From assembly GCA_051294905.1 (NCBI GenBank), contig CM119379.1, forward strand, positions 22,444,001-22,508,000: a DNA stretch of 64,000 nucleotides. The letters run 5' to 3'. This stretch comes from Botryllus schlosseri. Taxonomy: Eukaryota. This document shows, one piece after another, positions 37 through 41,306 of this stretch. The position numbers and the translations under genes were made by a program. Position 1 is the first letter of the stretch. Each line of letters opens with the position of its first letter. Under the pieces are notes generated by a model. The model made no database searches, was not told the origin of the DNA, and saw nothing but the letters and a program-made list of their open reading frames with translations.

Positions 37-3000
37 GTGTCACAGCTCGAATCTCAAGGGCAATCCTTCGCTGTGCAAGTCGACGGTGTCAAGAGAATTG
101 TGAACTCGAATGCCGCCGGTCTCGCGCAACAATACTCGCAAGTTAACGGCCTCGTCGCGAAAGAATCCGAGTTTCAGGTTTCGTTGGAAAGAGTTGAACG
201 GGAGTTGTCCCGCATAGATACGCTGCAGGCAGACCTGACAACTGTCTCTGATAGGTATGATACTTTACCACGCAGACAGGTTAGTGTTCTAATCGTGGTA
301 AGGTATTTGGTGGGTGGGTGCTTTCAAAGTTCAATTCAATTTACTGTTAACAATTTCATTATTTCAATACACCACAAGACTGCGATACAAGGAAAGATAG
401 GAAACTGTCTGAACGACTTGGAGTGGTCTTCGAAATCAGACACCCACCTGACCCAGGCGATGTAAAAATGAGGCATGCACACTGAATGCAAAGTAAAAGC
501 AGATAATACAGAAGGTCTGGCGACAAAATGAGGTGACATGTGTCAGAGGATCGATATGTCAGTCTGTGGTCTGGTAAACTTGAGGGCTGAGCAGTATTGA
601 TTCAGTATAAATTGTTTGTATTTCGACTTGAATGTGGACATGCTCAACGACTGTCGGATAGCCGGCGAGATGCTGTTCCACACTGCAGGTGCGGCTTATT
701 TGATAGAGCGATGATCTTTTACGTCGACCAAATGGTACTTATGCATTTTTGATGCCGAGGTAAAGAAGTCATTGAAATTTTCGTGGCAGTGACCGCAGTG
801 GAACTGATGCATAAGCTTGGCTAGTTCTTGTTTACGCATATCGTTTATGTTAAGAACACTGAATCTTGCGGGCTTGCCGGCTGAATCTCGCTTCCCATGA
901 CATGCCGCCCTATTTCTTGTCACTTTCTTTTTCTATACTATCTTCTTTACTTTCATTCAGTGTGCATGCCTCCTCTTTACATCGCCTAGGCCAAGGTGGG
1001 TGTCAGATTCCATAGACTACTCCTTGTCGCTTCGACATCTTCCTGTCTTTTCATTGTATCGCATTTTTTGTGGTGTATTGAACTGATAAAATTGCTAATA
1101 AACCAATGATGATGATGATGATGCATATTGGCGAATAACACAAAACGACCACTGACACCCTAAATAGGTGCAAGATACGGCAATATGTTCAGTTTCCTCG
1201 TTATAGGGGCTCTCTTGCCGAGTTGTCATGATAATTTCATTTAGCGGAGTGATACCAAAACCACTTTCCACTGTGCAAAATCTGAATTCTGAAAAGTAAC
1301 TAGTAAATAAACTGGAGTGGAAGCAGCCTAGGAACATAACAAGTGTGCGAAACTTACTTGAGTATTCGGAAAAAGTTGAATTCGTTTGTTACCGGCCAAC
1401 TCCGATGATGACTTCCACTTCGTCTTCCGATAGGTTTAAAATAGTCCTCATCTAGCCTTATGTTCACTTTTTAGGACAGATAGCATTTCAGAGTCAGTTT
1501 CGAGGCATGGCATGCAGCTCGCGAGTCTCGACGCAAAGTCGAGCTACATCTACGACGAAGTAAACACCACCACTTACAGACTGCACGAGTTGATGTCCGA
1601 TTTCCACGATGGGAATCGAAGGCGATATGCTCGGGAGAGCGAATTGGTGGGCAGTATCGAGGATGCAAAGAGCTTGATTTCCCGAGTGAATTCGAGTGTC
1701 AGTTATAACCGGGTATGGACCCAAACTATTGAGGATCATAGGTGTAATAATCATATGAAATGTTCGAATATCTTTTCTGACCAAGGAATCTGTTGTTCCG
1801 GATAATTGGTGAAGTGTGGATAAGGATGAGTTTGGATTCTTTTTCAAATAGATGAAGTTTTTGTTAGAAGTGTATGCCATTCTTACGAAATTGATGTAAA
1901 AATGACATTTCTTTGATCCATTGGCTGTACCGTTGACGCTATTAACGTCCCGCTATTTCGTGCACAGGCCGGTATTCTCTCCGTCACTGCAGATCTATCT
2001 ATGAACAAGGCACAAATTGACAACGTTTCATCTGATATTGGTCAACTGAAGAGAGTTATGGGTGAGCTGAGTATTTTCTTGTGATTTCTTGCTGTATATT
2101 CAAAAAATTTAATGATGATGAACTTCATCACGAGACTGCGATACAATACAAGCACACAAACTAGTTGAAATGAGTTTATAGATAAGACACTCGTCTCTGC
2201 CTACGAACAGTATTAAAAAACATGAAGCGGCATGTGGAATGATCGACAATATTATAGTAACAATCATGCTCTGTAATTGTTATATTAAATATTCCATTGT
2301 ATTACTGACTGCATCTTAATATGGGCGGAAACAACAAATTATAGTTATAGTTGCAATGTGAATGACCATGCTTACAAATAATTTACTACATTCAATGTTT
2401 ATTATATAAGAGTCTAAGAGCAATTATATTCACTTTTCAAGCCACCGCCAAAGACCTACGTAACTTGGAAAATCGACTGCAAAAAAGTTTGAACAATATC
2501 TCAGGGGATGTTGAAGAAAATCTTCAATCAATACAAGTTTTTAGGCAAAACCTCGAACAGGTAGTCAATTCATAGCGGTTTGCGGTAGAATGTAACACGA
2601 AATATTTCCACACAGGAAAGTGACATGACAATGAACGCTGGTAACATGTAAACGATAAAATAATGTTAAATCGGAGTGTTCTTCGTTTTGATTACTGTTA
2701 TGATATTTCAAGCCTGAGGATTTTCTAGACTTCGTAAAGCGATTTTGATACCTTACAATCATTTTTGTGTGTTGCAATCATGTGTTCTTTTGAAATAAAG
2801 GAAATCAGTGACGAATATGAGTGACCAATAAAGTAAATTTTCATTTGTCAGATATTACTTGTGCTACTGTATCAGGATGATTTTGAGTCAGATCATATTC
2901 AATTTAATAAGTCATGCTTTTCAAAATCGTAACTATGAAAAAAATTCAAGAATAAAAACGTTGAGTCGTCTGCGATAATCTTTTCCATCTTCTCATAGTC

Positions 3001-6000
3001 AAGTCACAGCAAATGTTGCTAACAAAAATATTGGTGTTGTAATAATAAATCAATTGAAGTCTGTTCTTTCTGCTTTTTGAAAGGCATCTGAGGATATCCG
3101 TTCAGCCAGACAGCAAGATAGCGTTCAGGATTCATTGCTCGCGAATTTGTCAACATCTCTTCAAGCTCAAAACGGCTCGATTCATGATATTGTTCAGTGG
3201 AAAAGCGACATTACCTCTGAGCTTTCAGACATATTACGACATCGGAGAGCTTTTGAATCAAACTTCTCAATGTATAGACAGGATGCTCTAAGCACCACCC
3301 TCGATTGGTATGTCAATTCTTTTGATGGCAATAAAATACAATATTGCCATTGAGCATTGGTGCAATCTGACGAACAGTCACTTATCTTTGATTAGACGCA
3401 ATGATCCCATATAGACTGGATAGGTCATCTTGACAACAGCAACATTAGCACCCTTCTATTGTCACCAACAATATCACACAATCTGTCAGAGCATACACTC
3501 ACTGATAGCGTAATGGTGATGTGTCCGGCTTCTTGATCGGTAGGTCGTAGGTGCTATCCCCGGCCGGGTCAGACCAAAGACTCAAAAACTGGTATCCGCG
3601 TCCGAGGGTATCTCGCTAGGCGCTCAGCATTCATGGATGGCATGGATGAGCAAAAATGGTGGTGCAGACTAGATGACCTTACTTGAAAGGTCGTATCGCA
3701 TCTCCACCGTCAAAGCATCACGATGGCAGGGTTGTAACCAAGTCACAATGCTCCGAGTCACAAGTCAATCTCACTTTTATAGTTTTGACTCGAGTCAAGT
3801 CGAGTCATTTTTAATCACCACAGAGTCAAGTCCGAGTCCAAGTCATCGAGAAGAGGTTCGAGTCCGAGTCATGGTATTATGACTCGAGTCCGAGTCCAAG
3901 TCATTGTGTTGACCGCTCAGTTTCCAGTTTTTGTTAAACCCACTTTTATAACTCTGTTTGGTGACATCGAAGGGTTCGCGTTTATGATACACTAATTTTC
4001 CTCACTTTTAACAGTTCTGGTCGCATTTTCAAGTACCAATACCAATAGACGAAATCCCAATAGGGTGATGACTTTACTATTCTTCGAAATTACAATGAAA
4101 TCTCGGTCTTAGCCGTCTGAGTCTCGAGTCACATGACTTGGTTCGAGTCATGCGCAATGACTCGAGTCCGAGTCGAGTCAGTACACAGACTGACTCGAGT
4201 CGAGTCATTTCCGTATTTTGAGAAAATGACTCGAGTCAAGTCGAGTCATCAGAAAATCGTGACTCGAGTCGAGTCATAACTCGAGTCATTACAACCCTGC
4301 ACGATGGTGTGGTTGATGGTTACTTCAGTTTCCCAAAAAAGTAGGAGCACTACTTTGCGGACCTCCTCTGGTCTCTATCAGAATTAATTTTCGTATTCTG
4401 CCTTGTACTAGTGTGCACTTGGCTGTACCAATTGTAGCGATAAGCGAATATATCATGCTCACGGATACCCGTCATGTTGTAGGATAGAAACCTTAAAAGA
4501 GGAAATCTCAGAGGTGCGTCTATACGCGCAAGTTACGGATCGAAAAATGGATTCGGGACTCGCTAATCTTTCGTGCAGCATCCGCGATTTAGAAGCCAAC
4601 ACGCAAGTGAGTGGGTCAACTGGTCGTTGATCCATGTCTGGTTCGTTGTCGTCACACGAGTATACTTTTGTTCAGCAATCGATTCTTGGTATTGAAGAAA
4701 ACGTCACCGTCTTAGAACTGGGAGTAGATGAAAAACTTAATAGAGAACTTGGAATGTTGAAAATTAACCAACAGAATCTCACTGGCGCCGTCACCAGCTC
4801 CGAGCTATTGATCGACAAAGTGCAAGACGAATTGAATTTGTTGAAGGAATGGAAATCAATGAAGTTGAAAGAATCATCGTTGGCTCATCATTTCCGGTCG
4901 GAGATTATGAAAAAGGTTCGATTGATAGCTCATGGCAGGCTTGTAACCAAGTCACAAGTCAACCTCACGTTGATAGTTTTCACTCGAGTCAAGTCGAGTC
5001 ATTTTCGATTCACCACCGAGTCTAAGTCATTGTGTTTGCTGTGCAGTTTGACTTCAATCCTGTTCAGCCCTCTGTTCTCAACTCTGCTCGAGTGATAGGC
5101 CTATAAAATTGCTCGCATTCATAATATCGTAGTTTTCCTCAGTCTTAACAGTTTCTTTCCCGATTTTCCCAGCATCTGGACTGATAGACGAAATACCAAT
5201 AACGCGGTGACTTTACTATTCTTTGAAGTTACAATGAAATGTCTGTCTTGGCCGTCCTAGTCTTGAGTCATATGATTTGATTCGAGCCATGCGCAATGCA
5301 TTTGAAAAAATGACTCGAGTCAAGTCGAGTCACCATAAAATCATGACTTGAGTCGTTACAGCCCTGGTTGTTATTCAAGTAGAATTCGGTGTTATGCCCT
5401 CAGTTTTCACTCAATTACAAGTAGGTACAATACATGTATATTCACATTGAAACGAACCCGTATATTTTCGGCTGGCACTCGTCAGGGGTAGATTCTTCCA
5501 TAATAATAGTGTTGCATTAAACCTTGGACCAGATGACAGGTCGCTTGCAACTAGAAGAGGAAGAATTCATTGAAGAGCATGTACCAGACAACTGCACTGC
5601 TGATGATGTGGATGCGTCCACCATGATGTATGTCAGATTAGCAATGCTGGCGATTGACCAGGACATCTTATTGGCCAATCTGACCGGAGAGATTGTGGAG
5701 AACACAATTCAGATTGAAGGAAATGAAGTCCGAATGATGCAAAACTTTTCTGCAGTCCAACAAGATATCACTAGCTTGTAAGTAACTACTGTCTTGAATA
5801 AAACAGTATTGAAGCTTAAAGGGTATTCAAACACGAGACAAATGAATGCAATTGAATTTCCGGTAACTCGCCCTTGCCGATAAAATTGCTATTTTACTAC
5901 TCCAGATCAAAAGATTTGAACCAGTGTTCTGAACGAATAGACAATAGTTCGATGCACTTGGAAAAATCGCTGAATAACTACTCGAAGCTATCGTTTGTGA

Positions 6001-9000
6001 AGAACGCAGTTGAAAAAGTGATTTTATTTGTTAACAGTAAAATTGAAAATTTGGTATTGAGAACAAAGGTAAGTCGTTTCACTATTACCTATTCAAATCC
6101 TAGTCCCGTGCTCGCCTAGTAAAGCAAGCTACAGATTCCTCCATTATTTATATATAGAAAAGACACATCATGTAACAGTGGTAATGGTGTATATCTGGTA
6201 GCAAGCTATATCTATATGTTTACTACATGAAACATTCAATTCATCTTCTTCGACAGCAAGTTGAGAATTCCTCAAATAATATCGGGGAGAATCTCTCCGA
6301 GTTGACAAAGTTGGTGAAAGATTTGGACGCTGAAAATCAACAGGAATTGAAAAATGTTACGTCTCTGATGGCACATACCTTTAATCTCACCCAACAGCAA
6401 ATGATGGAAGTGACGTCCCGGGGCTTGTACTCATTGAATTCATCTCTCCGGATGAAAATATCTGAACTGGAAGCGTCTAACGTGCAGATGCAATTAGATT
6501 CGAAGGTAGGATCCTCTAATTTGGTTTAATAACGTATACTGCTATATGTCTGCCCAAAGTTTTTTCACGTGTATTGTACAAATTCATCCTCACATGTTTT
6601 CTTTGTTATTACTATTGCATACTTTGTGAAATCTGTTTGAGTCTCTCTGCTCATATGCTTGTTATTATGCCATAAACTTTTGATTAGCGGCGCATGAATA
6701 GTCTACGAGTTGAATGAATTTTTCTGAGTGCAGCCCCCGAACAGTATACACCAGTTGTCGGGAACCTACGGCTCGCGAGCCATATATGGCTCTTTTGGGT
6801 AAAATGTATGGCTCTTTGCCGAATTTTTATTTTTGTACCTCAATATTGCAGCAACTGCTTAGTAAATTTTTATCAGGGCAAGAATAGGCTAATTGTTGTC
6901 GTGGCTGTATAAACATGACAAGACAATGGCGTCTTCAGGGATAGAGGGTTGGGCCCCTTTTCGAAATCCTCAAATTCAAGTTGCTTTCGCACCAGCTACC
7001 AATACCACTCGCGAGTTCGATGCACCCGACATCGTGCGCCTCGAAATTTCGGATTGCACGATACGTTGATGGATCGAATGATCAAAAATAATAACAGTTA
7101 TCTTGACGCCTGTATGACAATGCAGGTTGCAAATACATATTGTCTTCCTGATCTACGGCGAGAAATGTGTTGCCGTGAAAGTGACATTTACTGTTTATGT
7201 TCTTGATGAGTAAGTAACTTGGTAGTATTGGCGTTAAAATGTTGGCGTGTTGCGCAACGTTATGTTACCGCCGAATAATTTGAGAATTGAGAAGTTGATC
7301 AATATTTAGATTTTCGGAATCAGTGCGACAGTTACATTCGATAATTATAAATTATAAGCTATTCATGATGAATTGCGCTGTCATGGATGAAGCTTCAGAT
7401 GTGGCGTCACATGTGCCTTACATCTCCTTTCGCGCTTTATTTTCGCACAATAAATATGCAAATTGCGTAATTTTTGGAGCAAGAATGTTCCAAATCTAGT
7501 CATTCTAAAACACCGGTAGAAAATACCAATATTCAGTAAAAGTTTCACAAATTTCGTTCAGTTGTCCTGACGACAGGTGATGCCCTTCCTCAGTTGCGTT
7601 CTCTGACCCCACGTCAGTGACGTATCACACCTCACAATGGGTATGTACTGCTGTAGTGACCATGTTTAGCTCCACCTACGCATGTGATCATGGGTCCTCA
7701 AATTGAAAATGAAGATCAAGATGAGCCTACGATCTCGTATAGCTGACCAAAGTGGATTCATACTTTTACTATTGTCTACATCTGTTGTAGATGGTAATTA
7801 TCTCAAGTTTAGGGTCGTATCGTATGACTTTCACCGTAATACAATTAAAAACATGTAGGTTAACTTGCAAAAGATCCATGTAACTCAAGTTTCGCATGCT
7901 CAATTTAGGCAACCAATAATGAGTAATAAAAGTTTTTACAGAGAAAAAGTGTGACGCTCACCACGAATTCCATGTAGTGCGATCGATGCTGTGGTGACGT
8001 CACAAATTTTTAATTGTGACGTAACAATGGAGTGACATATATGGCTCTTTGGGGGTTAAAATTGAAAATATAGGGCCAATATGGCTCTTCGGACGAAAAA
8101 GGTTCCCGACCGCTGGTATACACTAAGAATACCGGTGTAAAATCTCCCGCTGTTGCAGATCGTGGCTCTCAACACTACCGTGAGTGTGCTAACTGATCAC
8201 TTGGAAGATATCACTGGCCAATTCGCTACTATCGCCGATTACGTTCGCCAAATGCAAAACAGCAGCGGTGGTTTACCTGTCGCCAATGCCATGCTCTGCG
8301 GAAAAGATTCACCTTTCCTACGTTGGTGCCGGAAGAAATATATTACATCTATGAACAGAGAAGTAAAGTGAGTAATTTTGGAGGATTGCTTCTCAGACTC
8401 CTACATTAGGATAATAAGCATTCATCCTTGCTATACGAATGGCTTTCCTTGGTGGCAGGCTCCTGGTTTTCACTGAATAACCCAAGGCTGTAACCAAGTC
8501 ACAAGGTTCCGAGTCACAAGTCAATCTCACTTTTATAGTTTTGACTCGAGTCAAGTCGAGTCATTTTCAATTCACCACCAAGTCAAGTCCGAGTCAGTGA
8601 GTAGAGGGTCGAGTCCGAGTCATAGTGTTGTGACTCAAGTCCGAGTCTAAGTCATTGTGTTCACTGTTCAGTTTTGAGTTCAATCTAGCTCAACCCACTT
8701 TTTGCAACTCTGCTCGAGTGATATAGAATGGCTCGCATTCATAATATCGTAATTTTCATCAGTCCAAACTGTTTCTAACCCTATTTTCCAAGTATCAGTA
8801 CTGATAGACGAAATAACTCCGAAATAACTCTGAAGTTACAATGAAATGTCTGTCTTGGCCATCCTAGTCTCGAGTCATATGACTCGTTCCGAGTCATTAC
8901 AACCCTGGAATAACCGTTGTTGATATTTCATGTCTTGTACTTTAGCTATGTCAGGTATCGGGACCTGTTCCAATATTTGTACGATGAAACTCAACGATTG

Positions 9001-27000: not shown

Positions 27001-27576
27001 CAGAGGTACAGAACTTCAATATATTCATATTGAAATGAACCCGAGTATTTTCGTCTGACACTCGTCAGTGGTAATCATCAGCAATTAGTAGAGAATTGGA
27101 AACAATATTAAAATTTACGTGCATGACATCTCCCAGGATTTGTGATTACTGATTATATTGGATTATTAATTATTATCCAAGCAAACTGTTCGGAATAGAT
27201 TTATGAGTAATGAATTGTTAATCATCTGGAATGCAATACCACCACATATCCGTGAATTGCCTTATAATAGATTCAAAAAAGCCCTACTTGATCACCTCTT
27301 GTCGTTACACTAACACTGCTGCCCTACCTCGCCCAGACATTGCTTCGATCATTTGCCACCATTGTTTAATTTTTTTTCTATTTTCCTTCAACTAAACATT
27401 TCTTTACAGCCAGACTGTTCAGAGTCAAGTGTACCTGTTTGATGCTGGTGTGATCAGACTAGATGACCTTCACGGTCTTATCGATCATTCCTATCTAATA
27501 CCGAATACTGTGCACGCATATTTTCTGTACCACCATCACTGCCGTTTGTTATGTATTTTGGTTCGATGAAAATAAA

Positions 27577-27614
<38 letters not shown>

Positions 27615-30600: not shown

Positions 30601-33600
30601 GGGGAAATGGAAAATATGTGTCAACGTCATATTGTAAGCGGCGTGTATTTGATCCATCCGCAGAACCGTTATCTTTTGATATTTCAGAGCAATTTGTCCG
30701 TTGAATTCGCTGGCATTGTCGGTGATTTCGTGGAATTGAAACAGTCCGCCGCCAGTAACGATGAAAGATTTGGACGCAAGGTGAAAGAGATTGATGCTAA
30801 AATCCTGGATGGGTCTGGAAGGTTCGTTAGGAGCGAATCAGCCGAATAAAATGTTTTTTCATATATCCGATATTTTGATGCTATTGACAAAACATATTTT
30901 TCTGAAATTGACGTTATGGCTGTCGTTGCTGTTACTTCAGATATTTCTTTGAACTTTTGGACGCACAAAATACAGAAGCAAACACGCGAAGTGACCAAAT
31001 ACATGAATATTGGCTTGACGTAGTTTTTGCAACTAATAAGCCAAGTCAATTTGATGGCGATAACTGGCTGTCTGTATGCGGGAGTAGTGAATGTTAAGTT
31101 TAAATGTTTTCATTTAGGCTCGACAGCCTTGAAAGGATAGTCCCATTCATGGAAACGAAATTGCAACATACAATTGAAATGGTATACGGAGTCAACAAAA
31201 CGGTCAACAGTTTGCAACAAATGCAACAAATGCGGGACGGTCAGCTCGATCTCATGTTCGCTGACATTCAGAGTCTTCGACAGGCAAGGATTTTCGTTTA
31301 AACAAATGAATATTCAGACGTTTCTTGACCTTAGTGTCTGTGACAATCTTGACAAAGTGCTGTGGAGCATCCATATTTTCCAACCGAGAGGAATAATGCT
31401 CAAACTCTATAATCGTACGCATACGGACTACTGCAGTGTCCAAAGACTTATCCAATCTTCTGAATAAGGATGCTTTGAATTGCCCTCTGCTCAATACTAA
31501 TTGTAGAGCTTCTTGGAGGAACAGAACTTCAATATACAATACTAGGTCACCAGCATGAAATTTTGAATAAGAGAGCGTTCAATGTACCATTTATAGATGG
31601 TACACGAACTCCTTTTGTTGACACAGTTTGTTTGTTTGTTTTTGGGGTATTCATGGCGTTTGTCGACTACTATGGTCAATTGGTCATTTACACCAGGCCG
31701 ATATTCTTCTTATTTTCCGTAACTGCCGACTTATAGCACGGCCCACCTCTAGGCTTTTGTAAGACACCGCTGACGCGGATGAGGTGGCGAGGAGGAGCCT
31801 AGGCCTAGCGTATTTTGATAATCGCAGTGGAAAACATTTGCTGGATAATCCCGTTTGTGCGAAAAATTATCGAGACGACAGAGGTTGCTTTGTTGGAAGG
31901 GGCCGTTTACACTTTCATTTGCATGCCTAGGAGTATACTTATATCAAAATACGCTAACCAAGACTGTCTCAACAAAAGGAATTTGTGTATCATCTTAAAA
32001 TAGTATATTGTACTCTCTCTTATTCGAAATTTCATGCTGGGGACATCATATTTTGTGATACGACTGTTGATATGCAATGTTCTTTCCAATTCTCTACTAG
32101 TTGCTAACGATTACCCCTGACGAGTGTCAGCCGAAAATAATCGGGTTCATTTCAATATGAATATACTATTCAATGATACTAATTGTGTAGTTCGAGTTGT
32201 TGTTCTAAACCCTTTTGGACCAACACACGTCATTCCGCAACTGATCTATTGCTCACATCTTCATCTGACAAAATCACGTCCCAACTATCATCTTCTAGAA
32301 CGTAAGAACAGCCGAGCACAAGGTTTCCGGCGCGGAAGACGCTTTCGTACGGTTCAGCAACGCTTCGACGCGTTACCGCATCAGCCTCTGGAACGACGTG
32401 CTGCAAATCATCAACACCACCGTCGAGAAAGTGGAAACGCAGGCTGAAGTTTTGGCCAGGGGCGGAGAACGCAGGGATCTATTGCTCGTTAATTCCGAGA
32501 GGAACGTCAGGCAGTTGTCGGAACGCGTTGGTGAATTACAGAGAAGGAGCAGAGTATGTTGAGTTATAAGTAGAGCCCGCCCTATTATTTTTATTGATTT
32601 ACTGATAATATCCAGTGGGCATTACACTATGAAAGAAGTATTGTTATCGGCCACTAGAGGTAATCTTTGTGATGTCATAACATGGTAGTCGTGAGTCAGA
32701 GTACTATATCATACTAGACTGGGCATATTGATATGTATCTGGTGGCAAAGTTTTATGCAGATGAAGTATTTCTTGTTTATTGCATCTTCAAGCACACCAA
32801 TGGCTGTAAAGCTGTTCAAATTAATGCTATGAAGGTTTGGATATGTACCATATCTTTTGAATAAGGCCTTTGTCAGTACAAAACACACCATCACCTTCAG
32901 TACATGCTTCTCGGTCGTTCAGGATACGGAGGTGCTGGTATCCGCAATAGCCCAGGAGACGAAATGGAACGGCGGTCAGATCGATACTTGCCTGCTGGAT
33001 GTGGAAGAGCTGGAAATGGAAAATGATCGTAAATTTCAGAGTTTGGAGAACGAAATCGGGAATCAAACCGCTGCTATCGCGAAGGTTAATAGCAAGGTAC
33101 GTCTGAGTGATGCGTAAACTTTGGACCCGGTATGTTCTTTCGGGTAGAGGCAGAAATTCTATCTGTTGCCTACAAATCTTTTCAATTCGAAAGTCCTCGG
33201 TATTGCCTTGTTTTTACTTTATCAAATTGTACATAATGCAATTTTAGACTAAAACTTTTTGAAAACATGAGATTGCTGAAAAATCAGTTTTGTTAGCTGT
33301 CTGTAATGGAAAATAACTCTGAATTGAGTGGTTTTTGCACTTGTATCGCTTATATAACTTATTTATTATAAATTGTGGCAATTCTGGCAATTTTTTTCCC
33401 AGCTGGATTCTCTCACCAACACCTGGATACTTCCGCCCACCCTGCCAAGTACGAAGCCCACCCTTGACACCGACGAAACAACAGGTAAGTTACAATTATG
33501 AAACTCGTCATCAACCAGGGCAGTACCCAGATAAGCAGTTCTCAACATGCTGGGAGTCATTCGTTAATCAATCTTATCTAAAGCCCATGACTACATAAAA

Positions 33601-36600
33601 TTTCAACTGTTAACGCTAACTGTGTGCTTGTAAGTGATTCCGCTTGATTTATATGCTACTGTTGTTTAGGCATCAAGGGTAATAACTTTGATAGATGTGC
33701 GTCTTGTGTCCTTGACTATGCATGTATTTTTGTCCATTGTATCCATTCGATTCTGTAATAAATTCTCTCTCGCTCTCATTATATGCTACAACATACATCG
33801 AATCTGTGTGTTTCCTTTGCTTTCATTGACGTCGACCAACCAAGCAATTTGAATTAAATCTTCCCTATTGTCAGCTGTCCAGTTCGCCGAAGTTGAAAGT
33901 CCTACGAATTTGCAAACGTACAACATCGATGCATCCAGCCTTTTGCTCTCATGGGACGCTTCCCCCACATCTGGAGTGACAGGATACCGCGTTACTCTTA
34001 CAAATGCTTTCGACGCCAAGGCTCCCCCGATTCAGGTACGCTCTTCGATTATAATCGCAGACTGAACGTATCACTAGATATTGTCGATTTTCAATCCAGA
34101 AAAACGTCGAAGATACACAGCTTAGAGTTGAAGGACTGTATTCAGACATGGCTTACAATGTCGAAATTTATGCCGAGAAGGGTATCATGACAAGCCCTGC
34201 GTTAACCGGTGTCGCTATCGCAAGTGAGTAGGAGTTTCGTAATGGTTATGTGTATGCTTAGCAGGGCTGTCCAAAAAAAAAACTTTTCCTTCAGATTTCA
34301 CTGGCTACTTGATAAAATTGTTAGGTTGGTTAAAAATAAAACGCTGCACACCAACTTTTGCTCAATTCCAACCAGTAGAAGCGAGATTCTTGCAGTTAAA
34401 AGTTTTGAATTTATCATTAAAAAATGAAAAAATAAAATTTCAAAACTTTTCGGTCGACCCCATAATAGTGTTTGGCTGTCGGTAGAGATGATGCATACCA
34501 AATTTGGCTCAATTCCAACCACTAGAAGCAAAGTTATTGCAGTAGAAAAATTTCTAATTCCATGATTTTATAATAAATAAATACTATTTTATTCAAATCA
34601 AAATTTTTCTACTGCAATAGAAGTTATTGCAGTAGTCTAGTGGTTGGAATTGAGCCAAATTTGGTGTGCAACATCTATACTGACATAGTAACAATTTTAT
34701 GGGGTTGGCAGAATAATTTTAAAATTTTATTTTTTTGTTTTTTTAATGATAAATTCAAAACTTTCTACTGCAATAACTTCGCTTCTACTGGTTGGAATTG
34801 AGCCTAAGTTGGTGTGCAGCGTTTTTTTTTAACCAACCTAACAATTTTATGAAATAGCCAGTGAAGGAAAAGTTTTTTTTAACAGCCCTAATGCTTAGTG
34901 TATGTTTACAGTCAGTGAGAAGTTCGAAATATTTTTCTGAGTTCAAAACACAGCTGGTTGAGAATCAATGAATTTGGAATGGTCGAAAAGACTTGGAGAA
35001 GACTGATTGTCAAACGCACACCTTGACCTGCACATAATAATGGAGGAGTTTGTGGATAATATATTCATACTGAAATCTACCCAAATATTTTTGGCGGACA
35101 CTCGTCAAGGTTAATTGTCAGCAACTAGTAGAGAATTCAATAGAGCTTGGTATATAAACAACTATGATGGCACGGACATAACAATTCGAATAATCGAGGC
35201 TAACAGATGTTTTTATGGCAATATTCCGATATAAAGATATCATCAAATTGTATATTGAAGTTCGGTATAGCCAAGATTCTCTTCGAAAGAGTTAGCAATT
35301 CGAATTTAAATGAGGCAAGGCTGCACGATACAGCGAAATTGATCTGTCGAGAGCATGATCCGGTAATCTCAAACACAAACTAATGTTGATTTAGTCTTTT
35401 TGGAGGACGTTACAAACGCTCAAACATGTGTCGAAGTCACGTGGATACAAACCCAGCTATGGCTTGTTTGATATGGTTTGCGTCGATAATACAAATGTAT
35501 TCCAATCCCTGACTTATTACCCCTCACTGAAGAAGACTTGGTAGTGAAATTTGTCTTTTTCTTTATCCTCTATTAAAGATATCACTACGTTTATAGCAGA
35601 TTAAGAAAATGTATTGCATTACAGCTGATGACTTAGATTAGCAGATTTTCATTCGTTCGTGCATAACTGTATACCTGCCTTTCTGTTCACATCGCTATTG
35701 CCGGTTATACAATTTGTTCTGATGCTCTCATGCTTTCTTAATAACATCACCTTTTTCAATGAGTAAATAAATTTGACTTTTTCACTAGTTGTGATGCTAT
35801 CATGCTATGTTGATTAATTGCTGCACTATAAACTGATAATTCTATTCTGTTCAGGCACAGTTTCGTCCGAAACATCAACTCGAAAGCCAGAAGTAACACC
35901 TACTGGTTCTGACATAAGTGAAATTCTATTCTTGTTGGATGTTTGTCGTATTAGTTTTAATAATTCTCTCTCGTGTTACAGTTTGGCATTGCAACTTTGA
36001 GCGTGTGTGCGCACTGAACAATACGAATGACGACGATTTTGACTGGGACGTGTATCGTAGCGGAGCCACCCGATCTGAAGAAACGGGACCCTCTGGGGAC
36101 CACACATCAAGAGACGGCGATGGTATTTCGCTACAAAAATAGCATATATTTAGGCTGTTTCGTAATATAAAGTCCAGTGAGTGATTTACACCTGAAATCT
36201 TTGATTTTAATCAACAGCATATACTCGTAGAAATAAAGTATAATAACACCTTCTACTAAAGGTAGACAGTTGAGCATGAAAATGACTTTATAACCTCCAA
36301 ACTGACCCCAACCCAAACTCCGAAATTAAACGATACCTTAACTCAGGGGTTTTCAACTCATGGCTCGATTTTTTAGGTCGCTTGTTCTCATGCAAAATCA
36401 CAATCAATATTATTGAAATCGTGAAGAGATCACAAAGCATGAAAATATTTACACCATGGTCCGTAGACAAAAACGTTACTCAAAGTGCAAACTTATAACT
36501 ATTTCATCAGTGAAATATTATGAGTATTCGTTTGGATCACAAGGTTTTACCGATCTGATATATTTTTTTAAACCATGAGCTAACCCTAACTTTAACCCAT

Positions 36601-39600
36601 ATGCTCAAGTGTCGCATGCACAACTGTAGGATGCTTCAATGTCCACAAACCGTTGAAGCTATATATATGTGATGTTGATTCCTGCTTAACAATACCTATG
36701 TCAAGCTTTTGTCAGCTGTACCTTTTCTACGCGGCATGCATATTATGTTGTGTTTCGTTCAGGTCGTTATGCCTTTATCGAAACCTCGAATCCTAGGGAA
36801 ACGGGTGATATCGCAAGGCTAGCCACATCCACGATGGAGAGTGTTGAAGGTAACTGCTTTTCGATACAGTACGTGTAATGATGTGTTGTATAAGACATGA
36901 TATTTTATATTTCATTCCGTACTTTTGCGATTTCCGTTTGATAGCATTCATTCCACAATTCACCTTTCGCAGATGCGTGTTTGGAGTTTTTCTACCACAT
37001 GTACGGCGTGGGGGTCGGAGACTTATCGGTCTGGTTGGTTTACCAAAACCAAGCAAAGGAAAAGATTTGGGAAAAGTCCGGAAACCAAGGCGATATGTGG
37101 CAGAGAGAAGTGTTAGAGGTTCATTCGGAAGAAAGGTTTCATGTATGTTGAAATTATTTTGGTAAATTCTTAAATTAATTAAATTAACTTATTCATTATC
37201 GAATCTGAAACTATTATATTAATCATAATGAGTCGAGTAGTGAGAATCTATTTTATCGAGCACTAAAATTAATTGCTAATTTCCACTAAGAGCTGATTTC
37301 TCAACAAGAATTGTAATTTCGATATTATGTTCCCACAGTGGAAGCCTTGAAACGTCAATTAGTCATATCGCAACATCGAAAACATTTGGAATAGGCAATA
37401 TTTTTTTTTTTATGGTCGAATAAAACTCACATGTTTTTACTTTCCGTATCATCCCTACTCGTATTACGTCATAATGAGGGTTTCTCATTGTGCCGAAAAT
37501 TAGGGTCATAAATTTACGTTTTGTAATATATGTTCATCATGTGGTATTGCTATATTAACATGGCAATAGGCAAAAAGATTTAATTGGTGAAGTCTATTGG
37601 TCTAGTTTGCATGCAAATAGCTACACAAAAATTCTGTGTGAAAAACGGGTATGTATTCTGAATGGAATAATACAGAACTGAATCCATGAAAAAAGTCGCT
37701 AGCTGCAGGCTAATTATTCAGTAACGAAATACCATTGAGGTAATGCGGACTTGTTTAATTGTTAGGTAGCACATTCGGTGGTATTTCATCGTGAATCAAC
37801 GTATATGCATATGAGTGACCCAGCCAATCAATATTATTACACCGCTGATCACAATGTTGTGTGCGCAGCTGACTTTTGAGGGCGTGAGAGGTTCCGATTA
37901 CCACGGAGATATTGCTCTCGATGATATCGTGCTGAAAAGAGGCAGATGTCCGAAACCGCTGTTCGAATGCAACTTTGAAGATCCCAATTCGTGCGGATTC
38001 GCGCAAGTAAGTCTCGATGTCATGACAATTTCACTCACACAAGTGATGCCAACATGCCAGCAAACTATTTTCTACTTTCCTAAGCTCAAAGTGAAAAATG
38101 TGGGTAGACTTGCCGAAAAAACTTGTAAGCAGAAGTAGGAGTAGTCTCAAAACATTGCCATGTGATTGAGTAGTACAATAAGGCAAAACCTATTTGAAAA
38201 AACGAAAGTAGTTCATTACCAGCCACTTCAGCTACTACCCGTGTACTTTCCTATTGCAATTACAAGCTCACTTGTTTCTTCCGCGTCAGGACATCACCGA
38301 TGATTTCGACTGGTCAAGGAATAAGGGGGCGACCCCGTCAGATTCTACAGGCCCGATGACAGACCACACCCTCGCAACCCCGGACGGTTATTACATCTAC
38401 ATGGAAGCATCAGATCCTCAGTAACATTTTATGACTCATGAAATTTTTTGAAAAGTATAAACGACACTTTCTTGTCAGCTTGCACAATCAGAAAGCGCGT
38501 ATCCTTTCGCCTGAAATACGGACCTCTGTAAAGAACTGCTTGCAATTCTTCTATCACATGCATGTGAGTCCATATCTCTTTCCAAAGCCAATAGCGATGC
38601 ATGATTTCCTGTTATTTTGCATCATCTCCAGGGCATCGATATAAATACTTTGAACGTATACACCACACGATCTGTGACGAATACCCCAGACAAATTGATT
38701 TGGAGTAAGCAAGGCCCTCAAGGTATGCATGACACTTACATATCATCCTCAGCCGATCACAGCAGACTTGGTCAACTAGATGATTCTAGTTGTCTGCTAG
38801 ACTAATTAGGGCACTTGTGAAATGTTTCTATGCTCTAATTTTACTTTTAAATGCTAATATCCGGTGTTCCGGAAAATGCCACAGGAGAAGTGTATAGTGT
38901 GAAGCGAGGCAAGCTTGCTGTACAGATATTTCCCATTCTCATGCTTATGGGAATGAACTCTGTTTTGATATCTACAAAACTTGAATTTTGTTGTGTATCT
39001 GTCTGATCCGAAATTTAATTCGATACCCAAGTTTTTGCAAATTCAGTAATTCTAATCTGATCTAATTTGGATAAAACTGTGTAGCTATAATTCTAATTCT
39101 AATATAATTCGGGAAAGATGAAAATTTTCTCGTTGTTCAGCTTGGGATTATAGTCGTGGATATTGTTTGTTTTTTGTAGGGAACGCTTGGAATTCGGCCC
39201 GCGTCAACATTGACATTGAAGGTCGGTACAGAGTTGTGTTCGAAGCTATTGTCGGGATCGATTATCATGGAGATATTGGACTGGATGACGTGTCGATATC
39301 CACGGGGTCCTGCGACACGCCAGGTCATTACTTGTCTCCCTCTTCACGGTTTAGATCACAGATCGATAAGTACCGAAGTATATCTGGATGTGCGGTTATT
39401 AACCTTTTCTTACCCGGAGGACACAAAACAAAAATCCGTTTTGACGACATTTGCCATTTCGAAAAGTGACTCGGGCTATTGACTAATAATTAACGTATCC
39501 AATGTGCCATGCTGCTTCTTCAAGCTACATACAACCTACATAGACAGTTCACCAAGAGTGCCAAGTACTCCGTCTGTTGCTGTGTAGAACACATAAATTT

Positions 39601-41306
39601 CCTAAATAATAATTGTTCAGTCCGTATTTAACATTTTCTTCGACCTATCCCAGAAGTTGATACCATTTATGGCAATGTGTAATCAGCACCCCTATAGCAG
39701 TTGATAATTGCCCGCTATCTGCACTTGAATAAAGTTGCGGGTATTTGCTTCTCTAGTCCCTCTAGTCCCGATTTGTAGAGATAGTGATTTAGAATTGTGC
39801 CCAATACCCAAATACTCAATCTTCATTAATTTAATGGGGTGAAGCTAGCCTAGCAATCTGGGTTATGGGCTATTGCTTCACGCAGTGTGTTCTCTGGGAC
39901 ATGCGCATGGAGATTTCTGCTACTCGATCGATGAAACGCCAACCGATTACCTGACTGCTTCAGCGGCCTGCAAAGAAAACTCTGGTCATCTGGCAACTGT
40001 CAAGACCCGACTGCAGCAGGATTTTATCAGAGTAAGACTGTTATTAGCCTCTGTGGCATGGTCTAGATGTCGATTTTCAATGAAAACCGGGAGTGGTCAA
40101 AGTAGTCAAAGCTGTTGCGCAAGTAGAAGTAGAAGTAACGTCACAAATTTTTACTCATTTTCGAGTTGAAGTCTTGTTAAACCCACTGTTTCCAACTATG
40201 CTTGGTGATACTGATTTTCCTCACTTTTAAGTTTCTGGTCGCAGTACCAGTTTTAATAGACCAAATGCCAATAGTGTGGTTACTATTATTCGAAATTACA
40301 ATGAAATAACCATCGTTGCAGCCGAGTCTCGAGTCATATGACTTGGTCCGAGTCACGCGTAATGACTCAAGTACAAGTCAAGTCAATACACCGATTGACT
40401 CATGCCAAATCGAGTCATTTTCCGTTTTTTGAAAAATGACTCGAGTCAAGTTTAGCCTGCCGAAAACCAACCTGCGGACCGATCGTCGTGACTATTGCGA
40501 CGTTATACTCTGAAACTGTGCTCGATATTTCAAATGCGTTTTCTCAGGATCTGGTGACAAACAACACAAAGCCCCTGAGTCGATTCTGGATCGGTCTCGA
40601 CGATCTGGCGGCTGAAGGACGGTTTGTCTATGCGTGAGTATTGATACGCACCTTTACTGATTGGGGCAGGTGAATGTGCAATGCAATCGATGAATTATTT
40701 TGTCATTGATTTTGTTGTAATCCAGCTAAGCTGCGGCGATGACGCCTGTTGAACAAACACGCTTGGAGATTATCTGCGTATAGCTAATATACACGGAGCT
40801 CATCCATTTCAATCAATATCGAATGTTCCCAACCATGGATTGGCTGTAGATAACTCCTGTTTGAAATACCATTAGCGTTACAAGCCTAAAGAAATATCGT
40901 ATGAAGAACGAACACAAGTAGGAGAATGAAAGCGTCCAATAGAAAGATCAATTAGGCTCTAACACCGTCTAACTAATACTACTAGTTAATAGGAAGCCGA
41001 GGTAGATGTTAAAGTTCGATTGACAGACCGTACTAGGTCATTTCAGCATCCTCGGATCTTTTCGTTACATCAGATTGTTTTCTCGTGTATTGCATTATCC
41101 ACAGTGTGTGCTTTCTTTCCAGAGACGGAACCCCGCTTGTCTTGGGTAGAAATTCATTACAAGCCTGGTCGGTGGGTGAACCGAATGACTCGGACGGGAC
41201 TGAGGATTGCGTTGCGATCGATATCGCATACAAGAACAGGGGGTGGAGCGGGTTATCTTGCGATACGGAAATCGGTTTCATCTGCCAATACCCGGCATTA
41301 CCGTGA
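37..41306 (+). CDS. Gene A (5'-partial, ~78 exons in window): giant coiled-coil rod + P/T linker + FN3 + MAM + MAM + C-type lectin; predicted secreted
   Basis: Chain of GT-AG exons encoding heptad-like E/L/S/N/Q-rich helical sequence, e.g. 37-254, 1475-1712, 1968-2061, 2442-2560, 3084-3307, 4483-4606, 4676-4915, 5533-5777, 5906-6068, 6257-6505, 8159-8367, 8946-9090, 9305-9571 ... 32923-33096. Then 33403-33484, 33875-34035, 34100-34223, 35855-35917, 35982-36122, 36763-36849, 36973-37142, 37869-38006, 38290-38420, 38479-38563, 38632-38722, 39180-39323, 39886-40031, 40548-40633, 41123-41306 (TGA). Splice phases were hand-checked from 32923 to the stop and give one open frame. Mid-gene exons (13-32 kb) were located only approximately. 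No TM or GPI signal at the C-terminus (...ICQYPALP*). Confidence 0.88.
335..925 (-). mobile_element. 5'-truncated non-LTR retrotransposon 3' end (CR1/L2-group-like), degenerate
   Basis: The minus frame reads ...FSVLNINDMRKQELAKLMHQFH...NFNDFFTSASKMHKY...*AAPAVWNSISPAIRQSLSMSTFKSKYKQFILNQY, with the WN..P...FK motif typical of ORF2 C-termini. It is followed by a 3'UTR that recurs at 935-1125 and 62335-62525. Confidence 0.7.
935..1125 (+). mobile_element. 3'UTR-only copy of the same LINE family with AATAAA and (ATG)n tail
   Basis: Reverse-complement match to 340-510; ends ctaataaaccaatgatgatgatgatgatg. Confidence 0.65.
3517..4390 (+). mobile_element. SINE-like element split by a hAT MITE
   Basis: ccccggccgggtcagaccaaagactcaaaaactggtat...ggcgctcagcat resembles the conserved core of widespread metazoan tRNA-derived SINEs (MetaSINE-like, recalled from memory and not verified). 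It resumes after the MITE at 4300. Confidence 0.45.
3727..4299. mobile_element. hAT-type MITE, family 1 (GACTCGAGTC-rich)
   Basis: TIR CAGGGTTGTAA/TTACAACCCTG, perfect 8-bp TSD CACGATGG (3719-3726 and 4300-4307), internal arrays of the palindrome GACTCGAGTC. Confidence 0.9.
4936..5366. mobile_element. hAT-type MITE family 1, internally deleted copy
   Basis: CAGGCTTGTAA...TTACAGCCCTG with the same internal sequence; no TSD seen. Confidence 0.8.
5438..5492 (-). mobile_element. Penelope-like terminal-repeat fragment with mutated hammerhead (5456-5489)
   Basis: Reverse complement ACCC-CTGACGA-GTGCCAGCC-GAAAATATAC-GGGT; the cleavage-site U is changed to A relative to consensus. Confidence 0.75.
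6752..8115. mobile_element. Non-autonomous hAT element (Buster/Charlie-like)
   Basis: TIR CAGTTGTCGGGAACCT/AGGTTCCCGACCGCTG (14/16), perfect TSD GTATACAC (nnnTAnnn), subterminal ATATGGCTCTT repeats. A weak transposase-C-terminus-like remnant (LDACM..ANTY..PD) lies near 7100. Confidence 0.85.
8483..8907. mobile_element. hAT-type MITE family 1
   Basis: CAAGGCTGTAA...TTACAACCCTG with perfect TSD GAATAACC (8475-8482 and 8908-8915). Confidence 0.9.
14397..14508. repeat. Intronic minisatellite, 28 bp x 4
   Basis: Unit TCTTAAGTCCTAAAATACAGACTTGAAG repeated four times with few substitutions. Confidence 0.9.
20040..20275. mobile_element. Inverted pair of Penelope-like terminal repeats (degenerate hammerhead at ~20204-20236, +)
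   Basis: A minus arm (agtaactagtatagaattgaaaac) and a plus arm (ttttcaattctctactggttgccgacgattacccctgatgactgtcagcc) flank a ~24-nt spacer. Confidence 0.7.
21965..22232 (-). mobile_element. Penelope-like 3' fragment, hammerhead with G12->A core mutation
   Basis: Reverse complement of the family consensus from the tail through the hammerhead (22026-22058) to the ORF end (tgtaccatttttagatggtacacga). It then flips briefly to the + orientation (catctaaaaatagtac). Confidence 0.75.
23269..23681 (-). mobile_element. Solo LTR (413 bp)
   Basis: TGTAGCGACC...GATGTTACA (TG..CA termini) flanked by a perfect 5-bp TSD CTATG (23264-23268 and 23682-23686). Orientation is inferred from an ATTAAA on the minus strand. 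Confidence 0.85.
24190..24400. mobile_element. Inverted pair of Penelope-like terminal repeats
   Basis: The minus arm has an intact hammerhead and the plus arm has the hammerhead 5' half deleted. Arms agcaactcgtagagaatttaaaagaacattgta / tacaatattcttttcaattctctactagttgct flank a ~13-nt centre. Confidence 0.8.
24218..24251 (-). ncRNA. Minimal type I hammerhead ribozyme (intact consensus)
   Basis: ACCC-CUGACGA-G(UGUCAGC)C-GAAA-AUAU-UC-GGGU: stem I ACCC/GGGU, complete catalytic core, 1-bp stem II, palindromic stem III AAUAUU. Confidence 0.8.
25489..26309 (-). mobile_element. Internally deleted hAT DNA transposon with transposase C-terminal remnant
   Basis: TIR TATGGCGATTTT/AAAATTCGCCCTA, perfect TSD ATGATCAC (25481-25488 and 26310-26317). 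The minus frame at ~25801-25905 reads SVERSFSILGKLLGKDRHFLLENVGKYL, a hAT dimerisation-domain ERSFS motif. Confidence 0.85.
26995..27110 (-). mobile_element. Penelope-like terminal repeat, hammerhead (27039-27072) with intact core but stem mismatches
   Basis: Reverse complement ACCA-CTGACGA-GTGTCAGAC-GAAAATACTC-GGGT. Confidence 0.75.
27150..27610 (+). mobile_element. LINE 3' end (CR1/L2-like) with AATAAA and (CT)16 tail
   Basis: 27182-27313 encodes QTVRNRFMSNELLIIWNAIPPHIRELPYNRFKKALLDHLLSLH*, followed by a 3'UTR, AATAAA at 27571 and a (CT)n tract at 27579-27610. Confidence 0.7.
28596..28772. repeat. G-rich/C-rich foldback with TTAGGG motifs
   Basis: Degenerate ggatattagggttgg repeats at 28596-28708 are followed by a complementary C-rich arm (ccaaccctgatatccgtcatacccc). 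Confidence 0.7.
31500..31630 (-). mobile_element. Penelope-like 3' fragment with internal deletion removing the hammerhead
   Basis: The family tail (agcttcttggaggaacagaacttcaatatac) is joined directly to the reverse-complemented ORF end (caatgtaccatttatagatggtacacgaactccttttgttgacacag). Confidence 0.65.
31818..32174 (+). mobile_element. Penelope-like 3' fragment (endonuclease C-terminal remnant + terminal repeat)
   Basis: Diverged match to 52480-52833, including ggaaaacatttgctggataatccc and the terminal repeat. Confidence 0.8.
32113..32146 (+). ncRNA. Minimal hammerhead ribozyme, core intact, stem III palindrome broken
   Basis: ACCC-CUGACGA-GUGUCAGCC-GAAAAUAAUC-GGGU. Confidence 0.65.
33875..34223 (+). 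CDS. Gene A: fibronectin type III domain (2 exons)
   Basis: VESPTNLQTYNIDASSLLLSWDASPTSGVTGYRVTL...TQLRVEGLYSDMAYNVEIYA shows the P..L, L.W, GY.V and L...Y.V FN3 hallmarks. Confidence 0.9.
34262..34890. mobile_element. Foldback hAT-type MITE with ~290-bp inverted arms
   Basis: CAGGGCTG...CAGCCCTA termini, perfect TSD ATGCTTAG (34254-34261 and 34891-34898); near-perfect palindrome around an AT-rich centre. Confidence 0.88.
35060..35290. mobile_element. Degenerate Penelope-like terminal repeat (minus) plus inverted tail (plus)
   Basis: Minus-strand hammerhead with core mutations at ~35079-35112; plus-strand tail atattgaagttcggtatagccaag at ~35250-35275. Confidence 0.6.
35982..37949 (+). CDS. 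Gene A: MAM domain 1 (4 exons)
   Basis: WHCNFERVC...DDDFDW...TGPSGDHT...YAFIETS...ARL...CLEFFYHMYG...W..SGNQGDMW...FEGVRG..YHGDIALDDI...C is the canonical MAM pattern. Confidence 0.93.
37960..39323 (+). CDS. Gene A: MAM domain 2
   Basis: CNFEDPNSCGFAQ-DITDDFDWSR...TGPMTDHT...YYIYMEAS...ARILS...CLQFFYHM...WSKQGPQGNAW...FEAIVG..YHGDIGLDDVSISTGSC. Confidence 0.93.
39886..41306 (+). CDS. Gene A: C-terminal long-form C-type lectin domain (3 exons)
   Basis: CSLG..HGDFCY...A..ACKENSGHLATV...FWIGLDD...EGRFVY.DG...W..GEPND..GTEDC...W...SC....GFICQ, then stop TGA at 41304-41306. Confidence 0.93.
40170..40451. mobile_element. Truncated hAT MITE family 1 copy
   Basis: Internal family-1 sequence (ttgttaaacccact...gagtctcgagtcatatgacttgg...gactcgagtcaag) without TIRs. 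Confidence 0.75.

Follow-up and report, generated by a model that had tools for sequence, protein, structure and literature searches.

Tandem paralogous genes of Botryllus schlosseri encode giant, predicted secreted coiled-coil proteins with an FN3-MAM-MAM-CTLD head

The window analysed here is a 64,000 bp stretch of the Botryllus schlosseri genome (assembly GCA_051294905.1, contig CM119379.1, positions 22,444,001 to 22,508,000 of the forward strand), to which 30 kb of upstream and 40 kb of downstream flanking DNA were added; coordinates are those of the window, and negative numbers lie upstream of it. The window contains no N. On the plus strand, open stretches with a high content of L, S, E, N and D follow one another across it at a spacing of a few hundred bases, and those between 37 and 41306 form a phase-consistent chain. 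When translated, the open stretches of the left half align with their counterparts in the right half as a single collinear chain (79 blocks, 5,413 aligned residues), and the two sets, here called genes A and B, are evidently tandem paralogues, both on the plus strand. Gene A extends from -10880 to 41306 on the plus strand and has 93 exons, of which 79 lie inside the window (37 to 41306) and 14 upstream of it (-10880 to -805); its coding sequence of 16,821 nt specifies 5,606 residues, close to the total of about 5,500 estimated in an earlier note on this DNA that was made from the sequence alone. Gene B extends from 42880 to 89345 on the plus strand (84 exons, coding sequence 14,982 nt, 4,993 residues). 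Its first exon (42880-42984, plus strand), which contains the start codon and signal peptide, is supported by conservation with gene A, and exons 2-36 (45649-64000, plus strand) encode a basic and then an acidic, Tyr-rich N-terminal region followed by a rod, the gene running on to 89345. The predicted products have masses of approximately 634 kDa (A) and 566 kDa (B) before the addition of glycans.

Gene models were built by splice-aware dynamic programming, trained on conserved blocks and afterwards extended by splice-site matrices and by a bonus for frame-specific conservation; boundaries on which A and B disagreed were settled by splice sites at homologous codons and by RNA contigs (about 20 exons corrected). 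Each gene has a single, terminal stop and no internal stop across 5,606 and 4,993 codons respectively, and the frequent mid-gene frameshifts or stops that the earlier note had named as evidence against its reading were not found, both frames being open. The introns of gene A comprise 91 of the GT-AG type and one of the GC-AG type, and a GC-AG intron is present at the matching place in B. All 83 comparable exon pairs are in the same phase and 68 are equal in length; the curation itself used A/B phase concordance, and independent dynamic-programming runs had already given mostly identical lengths. The exon-phase pattern 0-2, 2-2, 2-0, 0-0 recurs along the gene and may hint at an ancient duplication, for which sequence comparison gave no support. 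Several introns are very short (54-63 nt; examples lie at 30516-30687, 57866-57925 and 69712-69774), and some of these have no in-frame stop and are easily misread as coding.

The two proteins share 58.3% amino-acid identity overall, with the highest values at residues 300-1200 (72-77%) and in the C-terminal head (67-72%), and with 44-77% per 300-residue bin in the rod when bins mostly absent from B are excluded. The ratio of nonsynonymous to synonymous divergence (dN/dS) amounts to 0.31 for the rod and 0.22 for the head, with dS approximately 0.9, and purifying selection acts along the whole length (dN/dS about 0.3). A poly(A) signal (AATAAA, 41366-41371, plus strand) lies 60 nt past the stop of gene A and an ATTAAA at the equal distance in gene B, and approximately 150 nt before the ATG are conserved between the two; A and B are accordingly two distinct genes with 1.6 kb between them. 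Within the organism's own 495.5-Mb genome the only copies of this DNA are A and B, and exon 9 likewise is present in two copies.

RNA contigs of two older runs, aligned with the interval 30300-36200, disclosed a 63-nt exon, a 62-nt exon and the GC donor. A contig of 1,385 nt (run X1, record 2) joins 31118-31283, 32299-32553, 32923-33096, an 85-nt linker, 33875-34035, 34100-34223, 35855-35917 and 35982-36122, and extends further; a contig from a different study (run X4, record 8) joins 32923-33096, the linker and 33875-34035. Exons 30323-30515 and 30688-30821, together with the 62-nt exon between them, are confirmed by X4 record 4 and X1 record 1, the 62-nt exon accounting for 64 unplaced letters of X4 record 4. 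Since the joins skip the introns exactly, these runs contain RNA-derived sequence, and the presence of only two genomic copies of this DNA argues against a retrocopy. Spliced contigs from two studies therefore cross the boundary between rod and head, which places both in one gene, and the earlier proposal that one frame joins the coiled-coil exons to the head stands. The 62-nt exon (exon 74, 30572-30633, plus strand) has introns of 56 and 54 nt on either side and a homologue in B at 75507-75568 with the same donor, ATT/GTAAGC (the slash marking the exon end). The GC donor (31284-31285, plus strand, CAG/GCAAGG) is conserved in B after 76230, and the contig jumps from 31281/31283 to 32297/32299. 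The exon of the Pro/Thr-rich linker (33403-33484) has 82 nt in the reference and 85 nt, with several amino-acid differences, in the transcripts of both studies; in gene B it likewise has 85 nt. The length difference between reference and transcripts is an in-frame indel polymorphism in a species that is generally very polymorphic (contigs are 93-99% identical to the window). Exon 9 of gene B (50873-51393) is present in contigs from runs X4 and X5, of which X4 also yields spliced contigs. Contig depth is low, at 3-10x, in the runs containing the gene, and the exons confirmed by RNA are exons 73-83 (11 of 93).

With 11 of the 93 exons confirmed by RNA, and with the exons found only in A having no independent support, one could suppose that rod and head have been mis-joined or that the locus is a decaying pseudogene. 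We consider this highly improbable: the spliced contigs span the boundary in two studies, thousands of codons are open in both copies with a dN/dS of about 0.3 throughout, and the splice sites, including the common GC-AG intron, are conserved.

The head occupies residues 4997-5606 of A, all on the plus strand, and consists of a Pro/Thr-rich linker, a fibronectin type III (FN3) domain, a Ser/Thr/Pro linker, two MAM domains and a C-type lectin-like domain (CTLD). The first linker, rich in Pro, Thr and Ser, is encoded by exon 79 (33403-33484) and is supported by the RNA contigs and by gene B. The FN3 domain (exons 80-81, 33875-34223; individually 33875-34035 and 34100-34223) is covered by spliced contigs and matches Pfam fn3 in two halves (E-values 1.4e-05 and 0.0046), with profile positions 2-39 scoring 25.7 bits (cutoff 25) and positions 43-82 scoring 17.6 bits, in open stretches at 33853-34228. 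The 63-nt Ser/Thr/Pro linker exon between FN3 and MAM1 (exon 82, 35855-35917; B 80742-80804) is present in an RNA contig. MAM1 is encoded by exons 83-86 (35982-38006; 35982-36122, 36763-36849, 36973-37142 and 37869-38006) and MAM2, which resembles it, by exons 87-90 (38290-39323; 38290-38420, 38479-38563, 38632-38722 and 39180-39323). Exon scores against Pfam MAM (PF00629) are 30.4, 30.0 and 37.5 bits versus a cutoff of 26.4, the last two in MAM2, with open stretches at 35918-38135 and 38212-39466 and coverage of profile positions 1-42 and 129-158 by MAM1 and 12-52 and 112-157 by MAM2. The closest solved chains to the MAM1 exon are those of MDGA1 (best), enteropeptidase and neuropilin-1.

The CTLD (exons 91-93, 39886-41306; 39886-40031, 40548-40633 and 41123-41306, with the stop TGA at 41304-41306) matches Pfam Lectin_C (PF00059) at 26.5 bits in the last exon versus a cutoff of 22.6 (39849-41303) and at 17.8 bits in the first. 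Its six framework cysteines are conserved in A and B, 39 CTLD chains in the Protein Data Bank (PDB) match at E <= 0.01, and the C-terminal exon is nearest to the mannose receptor, mannose-binding protein (MBP), collectin-11, SP-D and langerin. The FN3-MAM-MAM-CTLD order of the earlier note is thus recovered with Pfam matches above curated cutoffs, and its hand tally of about 3,950 residues of rod and 610 of head agrees with the 3,988 (residues 1009-4996) and 610 found. Compared with human MBP (1hup), A keeps EPN and the following Glu and has WSG in place of WND, and B has EPS and WSD. Because WND is replaced in both and EPN in B, classical Ca2+-dependent sugar binding is doubtful, and the lectin activity that the earlier note had implied appears questionable.

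A signal peptide is predicted in both proteins (MQVTGRQALAVVILVYVAIDHVFC followed by Q in A and MQITGRLLAVVLLAYAVIYEVFC followed by Q in B), with a hydrophobic run of 12-13 residues that starts 6-7 residues after Met1 and is followed by D/E and then VFC/Q, the slash marking the predicted cleavage point. A scan of the whole protein revealed no hydrophobic 19-mer outside residues 1-28, and there is no transmembrane or glycosylphosphatidylinositol (GPI) tail, the chain stopping 6 residues after the last CTLD cysteine (...GFICQYPALP) at a stop conserved in A and B, in agreement with the earlier view that a membrane anchor is lacking. With a cleavable-type signal peptide and no membrane anchor, A and B are predicted to be secreted. 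The signal peptide is followed by a basic stretch, the conserved Cys192 and an acidic region rich in Tyr; the N-terminal part upstream of the in-window rod amounts to 1,008 residues in A and 993 in B, as had been anticipated from the roughly 1,000 additional residues, with signal peptide, seen in gene B. Neither A nor B has a conserved furin site, and neither contains a collagen region, there being no run of at least four G-X-Y triplets.

The order of an N-terminal hydrophobic segment, a stalk and a C-terminal CTLD is that of type II CTLD receptors, and the CTLD exon falls nearest the mannose-receptor, collectin and langerin group. These features would fit a giant cell-surface receptor of type II topology, comparable to class A scavenger receptors, langerin and DC-SIGN, whose hydrophobic segment stays uncleaved as a signal anchor and keeps the rod on the cell, with the lectin-like head at a distance from the membrane. 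Against this, the short hydrophobic run so close to Met1, the charged residue after it and the small-residue -3/-1 pattern at VFC/Q, present in both copies, are what a cleaved signal peptide typically shows, and a cytoplasmic tail is absent. We regard this reading as quite unlikely.

The rod spans approximately 4,970 residues in A (25-4996) and 4,360 in B. In the window it is encoded by exons 15-78 of gene A (37-33096, plus strand; 64 exons, residues 1009-4996), which are recognised by an open frame, concordance with B, heptad periodicity and an excess of N-X-S/T sequons. Exons 15-26 are at 37-254, 1475-1712, 1968-2061, 2442-2560, 3084-3307, 4483-4606, 4676-4915, 5533-5777, 5906-6068, 6257-6505, 8159-8367 and 8946-9090; exons 27-38 at 9305-9571, 10066-10196, 10255-10378, 10903-11109, 11255-11458, 11588-11791, 12215-12417, 12534-12654, 12788-12877, 12943-13148, 13210-13464 and 13655-13760; exons 39-50 at 13929-14180, 14740-14948, 15258-15536, 15743-16030, 16573-16672, 16745-16972, 17120-17307, 17533-17745, 17807-17939, 17995-18135, 18301-18467 and 18650-18832; exons 51-62 at 18893-19004, 19226-19483, 19606-19811, 20393-20680, 20832-20952, 21020-21292, 21351-21419, 21489-21761, 21820-21867, 22355-22603, 22665-22733 and 22928-23200; and exons 63-78 at 23780-23964, 24469-24756, 24893-25013, 25106-25335, 26400-26672, 26856-26967, 28075-28341, 28794-29002, 29068-29186, 29652-29821, 30323-30515, 30572-30633, 30688-30821, 31118-31283, 32299-32553 and 32923-33096.

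Prolines number only 22 in the 4,970 residues of the A rod, with one Pro-free stretch of 2,128 residues, and the whole A protein contains 1.0% Pro, 3.9% Gly and 7.4% Asn. Hydrophobic periodicity peaks at 3.5 (5.4x shuffled), 3.59 (4.3x) and 2.33 (2.1x), and 28-residue windows that exceed the 99th percentile of shuffles take in 57% of rod residues (77% for the 95th), which gives the rod the heptad character to be expected of the proposed coiled coil. Heptad coverage is 0.86-0.9 in residues 400-1200 and 0.4-0.7 in residues 1200-4800. AlphaFold2 (AF2) models exon 9 as a single helix of 170 residues (3-172; predicted local distance difference test, pLDDT, 72), and the rod has, with its 3.5 and 2.33 peaks and this long modelled helix, the 7/2 and 7/3 periodicity over long helices that characterises multi-stranded coiled coils. 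Beta-branched residues make up 38% at heptad position a and 25% at d, a weak hint of more than two strands. The A rod contains 132 N-X-S/T sequons versus 64.5 +/- 7.0 expected from 300 shuffles, and 76 of the 111 aligned A sequons are kept in B; the Asn of the sequons occupies position c, e, g or f of the heptad, and a or d in only 1 of 80 cases.

Conserved rod cysteines are at 1693 and 1703 (a C-X9-C loop), 2696, 4066 and 4961. The last of these is in the last rod exon (32923-33096, plus strand), which is 81% identical between A and B, and it is a candidate for an inter-chain disulphide. We note that the mid-rod Cys-X9-Cys loop contains prolines in both paralogues (8159-8367 in A and 59465-59673 in B; LCGKDSPFLRWC and LCERSMPFLHLC) and is likely to be a disulphide-closed kink or hinge. 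Comparison of all exons with each other by BLASTP and phmmer revealed no sequence repeats in the rod, the only match being that of MAM1 with MAM2. Ten large rod exons gave no Pfam match above the curated cutoff and only weak, generic helical families, and PDB profile searches with two rod exons found nothing significant.

The two proteins differ in length by 613 residues, and the difference lies chiefly in two segments of the rod. The first A-only segment (13114-15372, plus strand; 972 nt of coding sequence, 324 residues) runs from the 3' end of exon 36 through exons 37-40 into the 5' part of exon 41. The collinear chain closes tightly around it, A 12943-13113 corresponding to B 63769-63939 and A 15373-15546 to B 63946-64119, and gene B exon 36 (63769-64109) consists of the first 171 nt of one ancestral exon and the last 164 nt of the exon five positions on, fused in frame. 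The second is a four-exon unit (exons 66-69, 25106-28341, plus strand; 882 nt, 294 residues) with phases 0-2, 2-2, 2-0 and 0-0, for which an alternative path has three exons, the length being uncertain by about 70 residues. The A-only exons (13210-14948 and 25106-28341) are placed by coding score, with neither paralogue nor RNA support, and their boundaries are less certain than those elsewhere. Neither A-only segment resembles any other part of the gene, so they are not recent duplications, and their loss in B is the simpler reading of a two-copy comparison made without an outgroup. Since A and B differ by clean, in-frame losses of 324 and 294 residues, a change in rod length appears to be tolerated. 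A (CT)n-type microsatellite at 27560-27600, which reads SLSLSLSL, is within a long intron of the four-exon unit.

Searches with exon 9 against a library of 1.84 billion proteins returned only unnamed open reading frames (ORFs) on short contigs and no annotated protein with similarity; one ORF shares 82% identity with B, another has 47% identity and the same exon 7-9 layout, and two ENA metagenome ORFs are 23% identical. A library of 5.8 billion proteins gave one matching ORF. Such libraries may leave out close relatives, and the absence of annotated orthologues is not evidence of novelty. Long, weak exon-9 matches to an unnamed Schistosoma protein and an AHNAK-like protein were set aside as generic coiled coils or unrelated. 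No protein of this architecture was found in the literature. We conclude that the A/B locus is genuine and transcribed, and that it encodes an uncharacterised variant of the stalked lectin-like or secreted coiled-coil proteins.

Among the stalked lectins, the collectins and class A scavenger receptors (MBP, SP-D, collectin-11, CL-P1/collectin-12 and SR-A) have a C-terminal CTLD on an alpha-helical coiled-coil stalk that clusters the heads, a plan that A and B would share. However, collectins have a Gly-X-Y region that is absent from A and B, their coiled-coil neck directly precedes the carbohydrate-recognition domain whereas a linker, FN3 and two MAM domains intervene here, and they carry EPN or QPD together with WND in place of the EPN/WSG of A and EPS/WSD of B. 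Class A scavenger receptors and type II CTLD receptors have a cytoplasmic tail and transmembrane signal anchor, neither of which is seen in A or B, and the stalks of collectins and scavenger receptors are tens to a few hundred residues long, compared with about 4,970. Lacking the collagen region, the anchor and the WND motif, A and B would not be classed as members of either group. MDGA1 and MDGA2 (Ig6-FN3-MAM-GPI) similarly have FN3 followed by MAM near the C-terminus, but they have Ig domains and a GPI signal, whereas A and B have no Ig domain in the rod exons scanned, no GPI signal, a second MAM and a CTLD. EMILIN/multimerin and laminin are secreted, glycosylated and multimeric matrix proteins in which a coiled coil bears terminal globular binding domains, and A and B would share this plan; they differ in that the coiled coils of those proteins are a few hundred residues long and their terminal domains are gC1q, EMI, LG and LN, and no sequence relation to the rod exons was detected.

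Among the very long coiled coils, giantin and the golgins also have a non-repetitive rod of thousands of residues, but giantin is cytoplasmic and tail-anchored whereas A and B have a signal peptide, a two-fold excess of sequons and extracellular domains. The giantin coiled coil, of 3,056 residues, was named the longest known in a 2016 review, and long cytoplasmic coiled coils of this kind are read as spacers in which length is kept while sequence drifts (PMC5082667). The earlier note knew of no named protein comparable to A and B; this held insofar as no characterised relative was found, but a secreted coiled coil of 4,068 residues has been published from Dreissena, the byssal thread precursor tpf1 (440 kDa, predicted length about 600 nm), which was described in 2023 as the largest coiled coil, is intronless with 19-20% Asn (linked to a beta-transition) and has a proposed bacterial origin (PMC10691215). 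A, B and tpf1 have in common a secreted, ultra-long predicted coiled coil, with the rod here of the same order but longer. Gene A differs from tpf1 in its 93 exons, its 7.4% Asn and its animal FN3, MAM and CTLD domains, and these features set tpf1 apart as a probable functional analogue and not a relative.

Several repeats and a neighbouring gene accompany the locus. An interspersed repeat in introns of both genes (31480-32270, 52070-52870 and 54300-54840) has a GIY-YIG-like translation (YVGRTSKRLQERINQHVP and IGKHLLDNP) and is very abundant in all four runs, with contig depth in the thousands and raw-read depth of 10-130; it shows many opposite-strand joints from 31538-31540 to 32172-32174, as if ending in inverted repeats. 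A dispersed, minisatellite-like family that reads TRV(K/E)SSH in several frames (3540-4320, 8477-8647, 40200-40440, 49180-49750 and -29900 to -29360) has copies within introns of A and B as well as upstream of A. A further intronic repeat, between the FN3 and linker exons (34240-35230), has contig depth in the hundreds to thousands in X1 and X4 and low raw-read depth. Upstream of gene A, a neighbouring gene on the plus strand (-28570 to -16500) has strongly acidic exons, such as those at -28570 to -28154 and -19477 to -19226.

A plausible scenario, and one that we hold to be somewhat probable, is that A and B are secreted, glycan-coated, hinged coiled-coil rods with a C-terminal binding module, acting as an extracellular tether or cross-linking strut; the number of associating chains and their orientation, the true length, the ligand and the tissue are inferred. 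The roles that the earlier note had suggested, as a tether, a mesh or a molecule of innate defence, are speculative. The chains would pair or triple in parallel to form an alpha-helical coiled coil with occasional hinges, the single conserved cysteine near each end might staple them together, and N-glycans would occupy outward-facing positions of the rod. The rod would then be a long, length-tolerant spacer of some hundreds of nm, and 0.74 µm at most, at the end of which two or three clustered MAM/CTLD heads would bind other matrix or surface molecules.

Several observations weigh against this scenario. A full-length 17-kb mRNA is not among the transcript data, RNA support being limited to exons 73-83, and two bulk RNA-seq runs (X11 and X15) have no exon coverage and show depth only over intronic repeats, which indicates that expression is low or restricted. 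In the head, two of the five canonical Ca2+-site-2 ligands are missing from the CTLD in both copies. In the rod, the median segment of constant register is, by a crude assignment, only about 42 residues long, and AF2 models the mid-rod exon 54 as a helix (2-28), a loop and a second helix (36-94) with pLDDT 91 and predicted template-modelling score (pTM) 0.61, such that the rod may double back on itself in places. With a rise of 0.1485 nm per residue, rod length comes to 738 nm in A and 647 nm in B, but given the helix-loop-helix in exon 54 a rise of 0.15 nm per residue gives an upper bound only, and the straight filament of about 0.7 micron envisaged in the earlier note has to be relaxed to that bound.

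Taken further, the high-confidence helix-loop-helix of exon 54 would be consistent with the middle 3,600 or so residues folding back into intramolecular helical bundles, so that the protein would be a beaded, rod-like monomer or dimer with a length several times below 0.7 µm. Foldseek with the exon-54 model returned nothing at E <= 0.001, and its weak neighbours are helical hairpins; the lower heptad coverage of residues 1200-4800 and the frequent register changes point in the same direction. Nevertheless, isolated amphipathic fragments often fold back in monomer prediction, there are only 36 polar candidate break segments in 4,970 residues (median spacing 94, maximum 710), four of which fall within exon 9 where an unbroken helix is modelled, and no repeats of bundle size are present. 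We consider the beaded rod unlikely.

MAM domains are oligomerisation and adhesion modules, and an arrangement in which the rods bundle laterally into secreted threads or sheets, cross-linked by the heads and terminal cysteines, would make A and B a bulk structural polymer comparable to coiled-coil silks and byssal thread precursors. For this there is the precedent of tpf1 as a very large secreted coiled-coil precursor (PMC10691215), to which the heptad-patterned rod is similar or greater in size. Such a fibre-forming role seems to us improbable to a similar degree, given that genes for bulk materials are usually very highly expressed in the gland, as opposed to the 3-10x contig depth here and none in the two bulk runs, that a helix surface so densely N-glycosylated would be an obstacle to close side-by-side packing, and that the Asn content is well below that associated with the beta-transition of tpf1.

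Returning to the tether or strut, a stronger form of it has the rod as an uninterrupted parallel coiled coil, coated with glycans and about 0.6-0.7 µm long, that sets a sub-micron spacing in a secreted structure of this animal of filter-feeding type, for example a mucus net or matrix mesh cross-linked via the heads, with the paralogues giving two mesh or tether lengths. We hold this form to be rather unlikely; if true, it would be the longest coiled coil known and the first of such scale outside the cell in a deuterostome.

If the rod is as its sequence suggests, A and B would be the largest coiled-coil proteins yet described, at about 4,970 residues versus 3,056 in giantin (PMC5082667) and 4,068 in total in tpf1 (PMC10691215). 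They would also be extracellular and densely N-glycosylated. For the present the practical value is modest, pending knowledge of the tissue of expression and of the ligand. On the same condition as to the rod, the design of a stalk with clustered lectin-like heads would reach more than an order of magnitude farther than in collectins and scavenger receptors, and the clean, in-frame loss of whole rod segments between the two paralogues is what would be expected if length, and not sequence, were under selection. The pair would thus offer a natural experiment on whether coiled coils can act as rulers or struts outside the cell.

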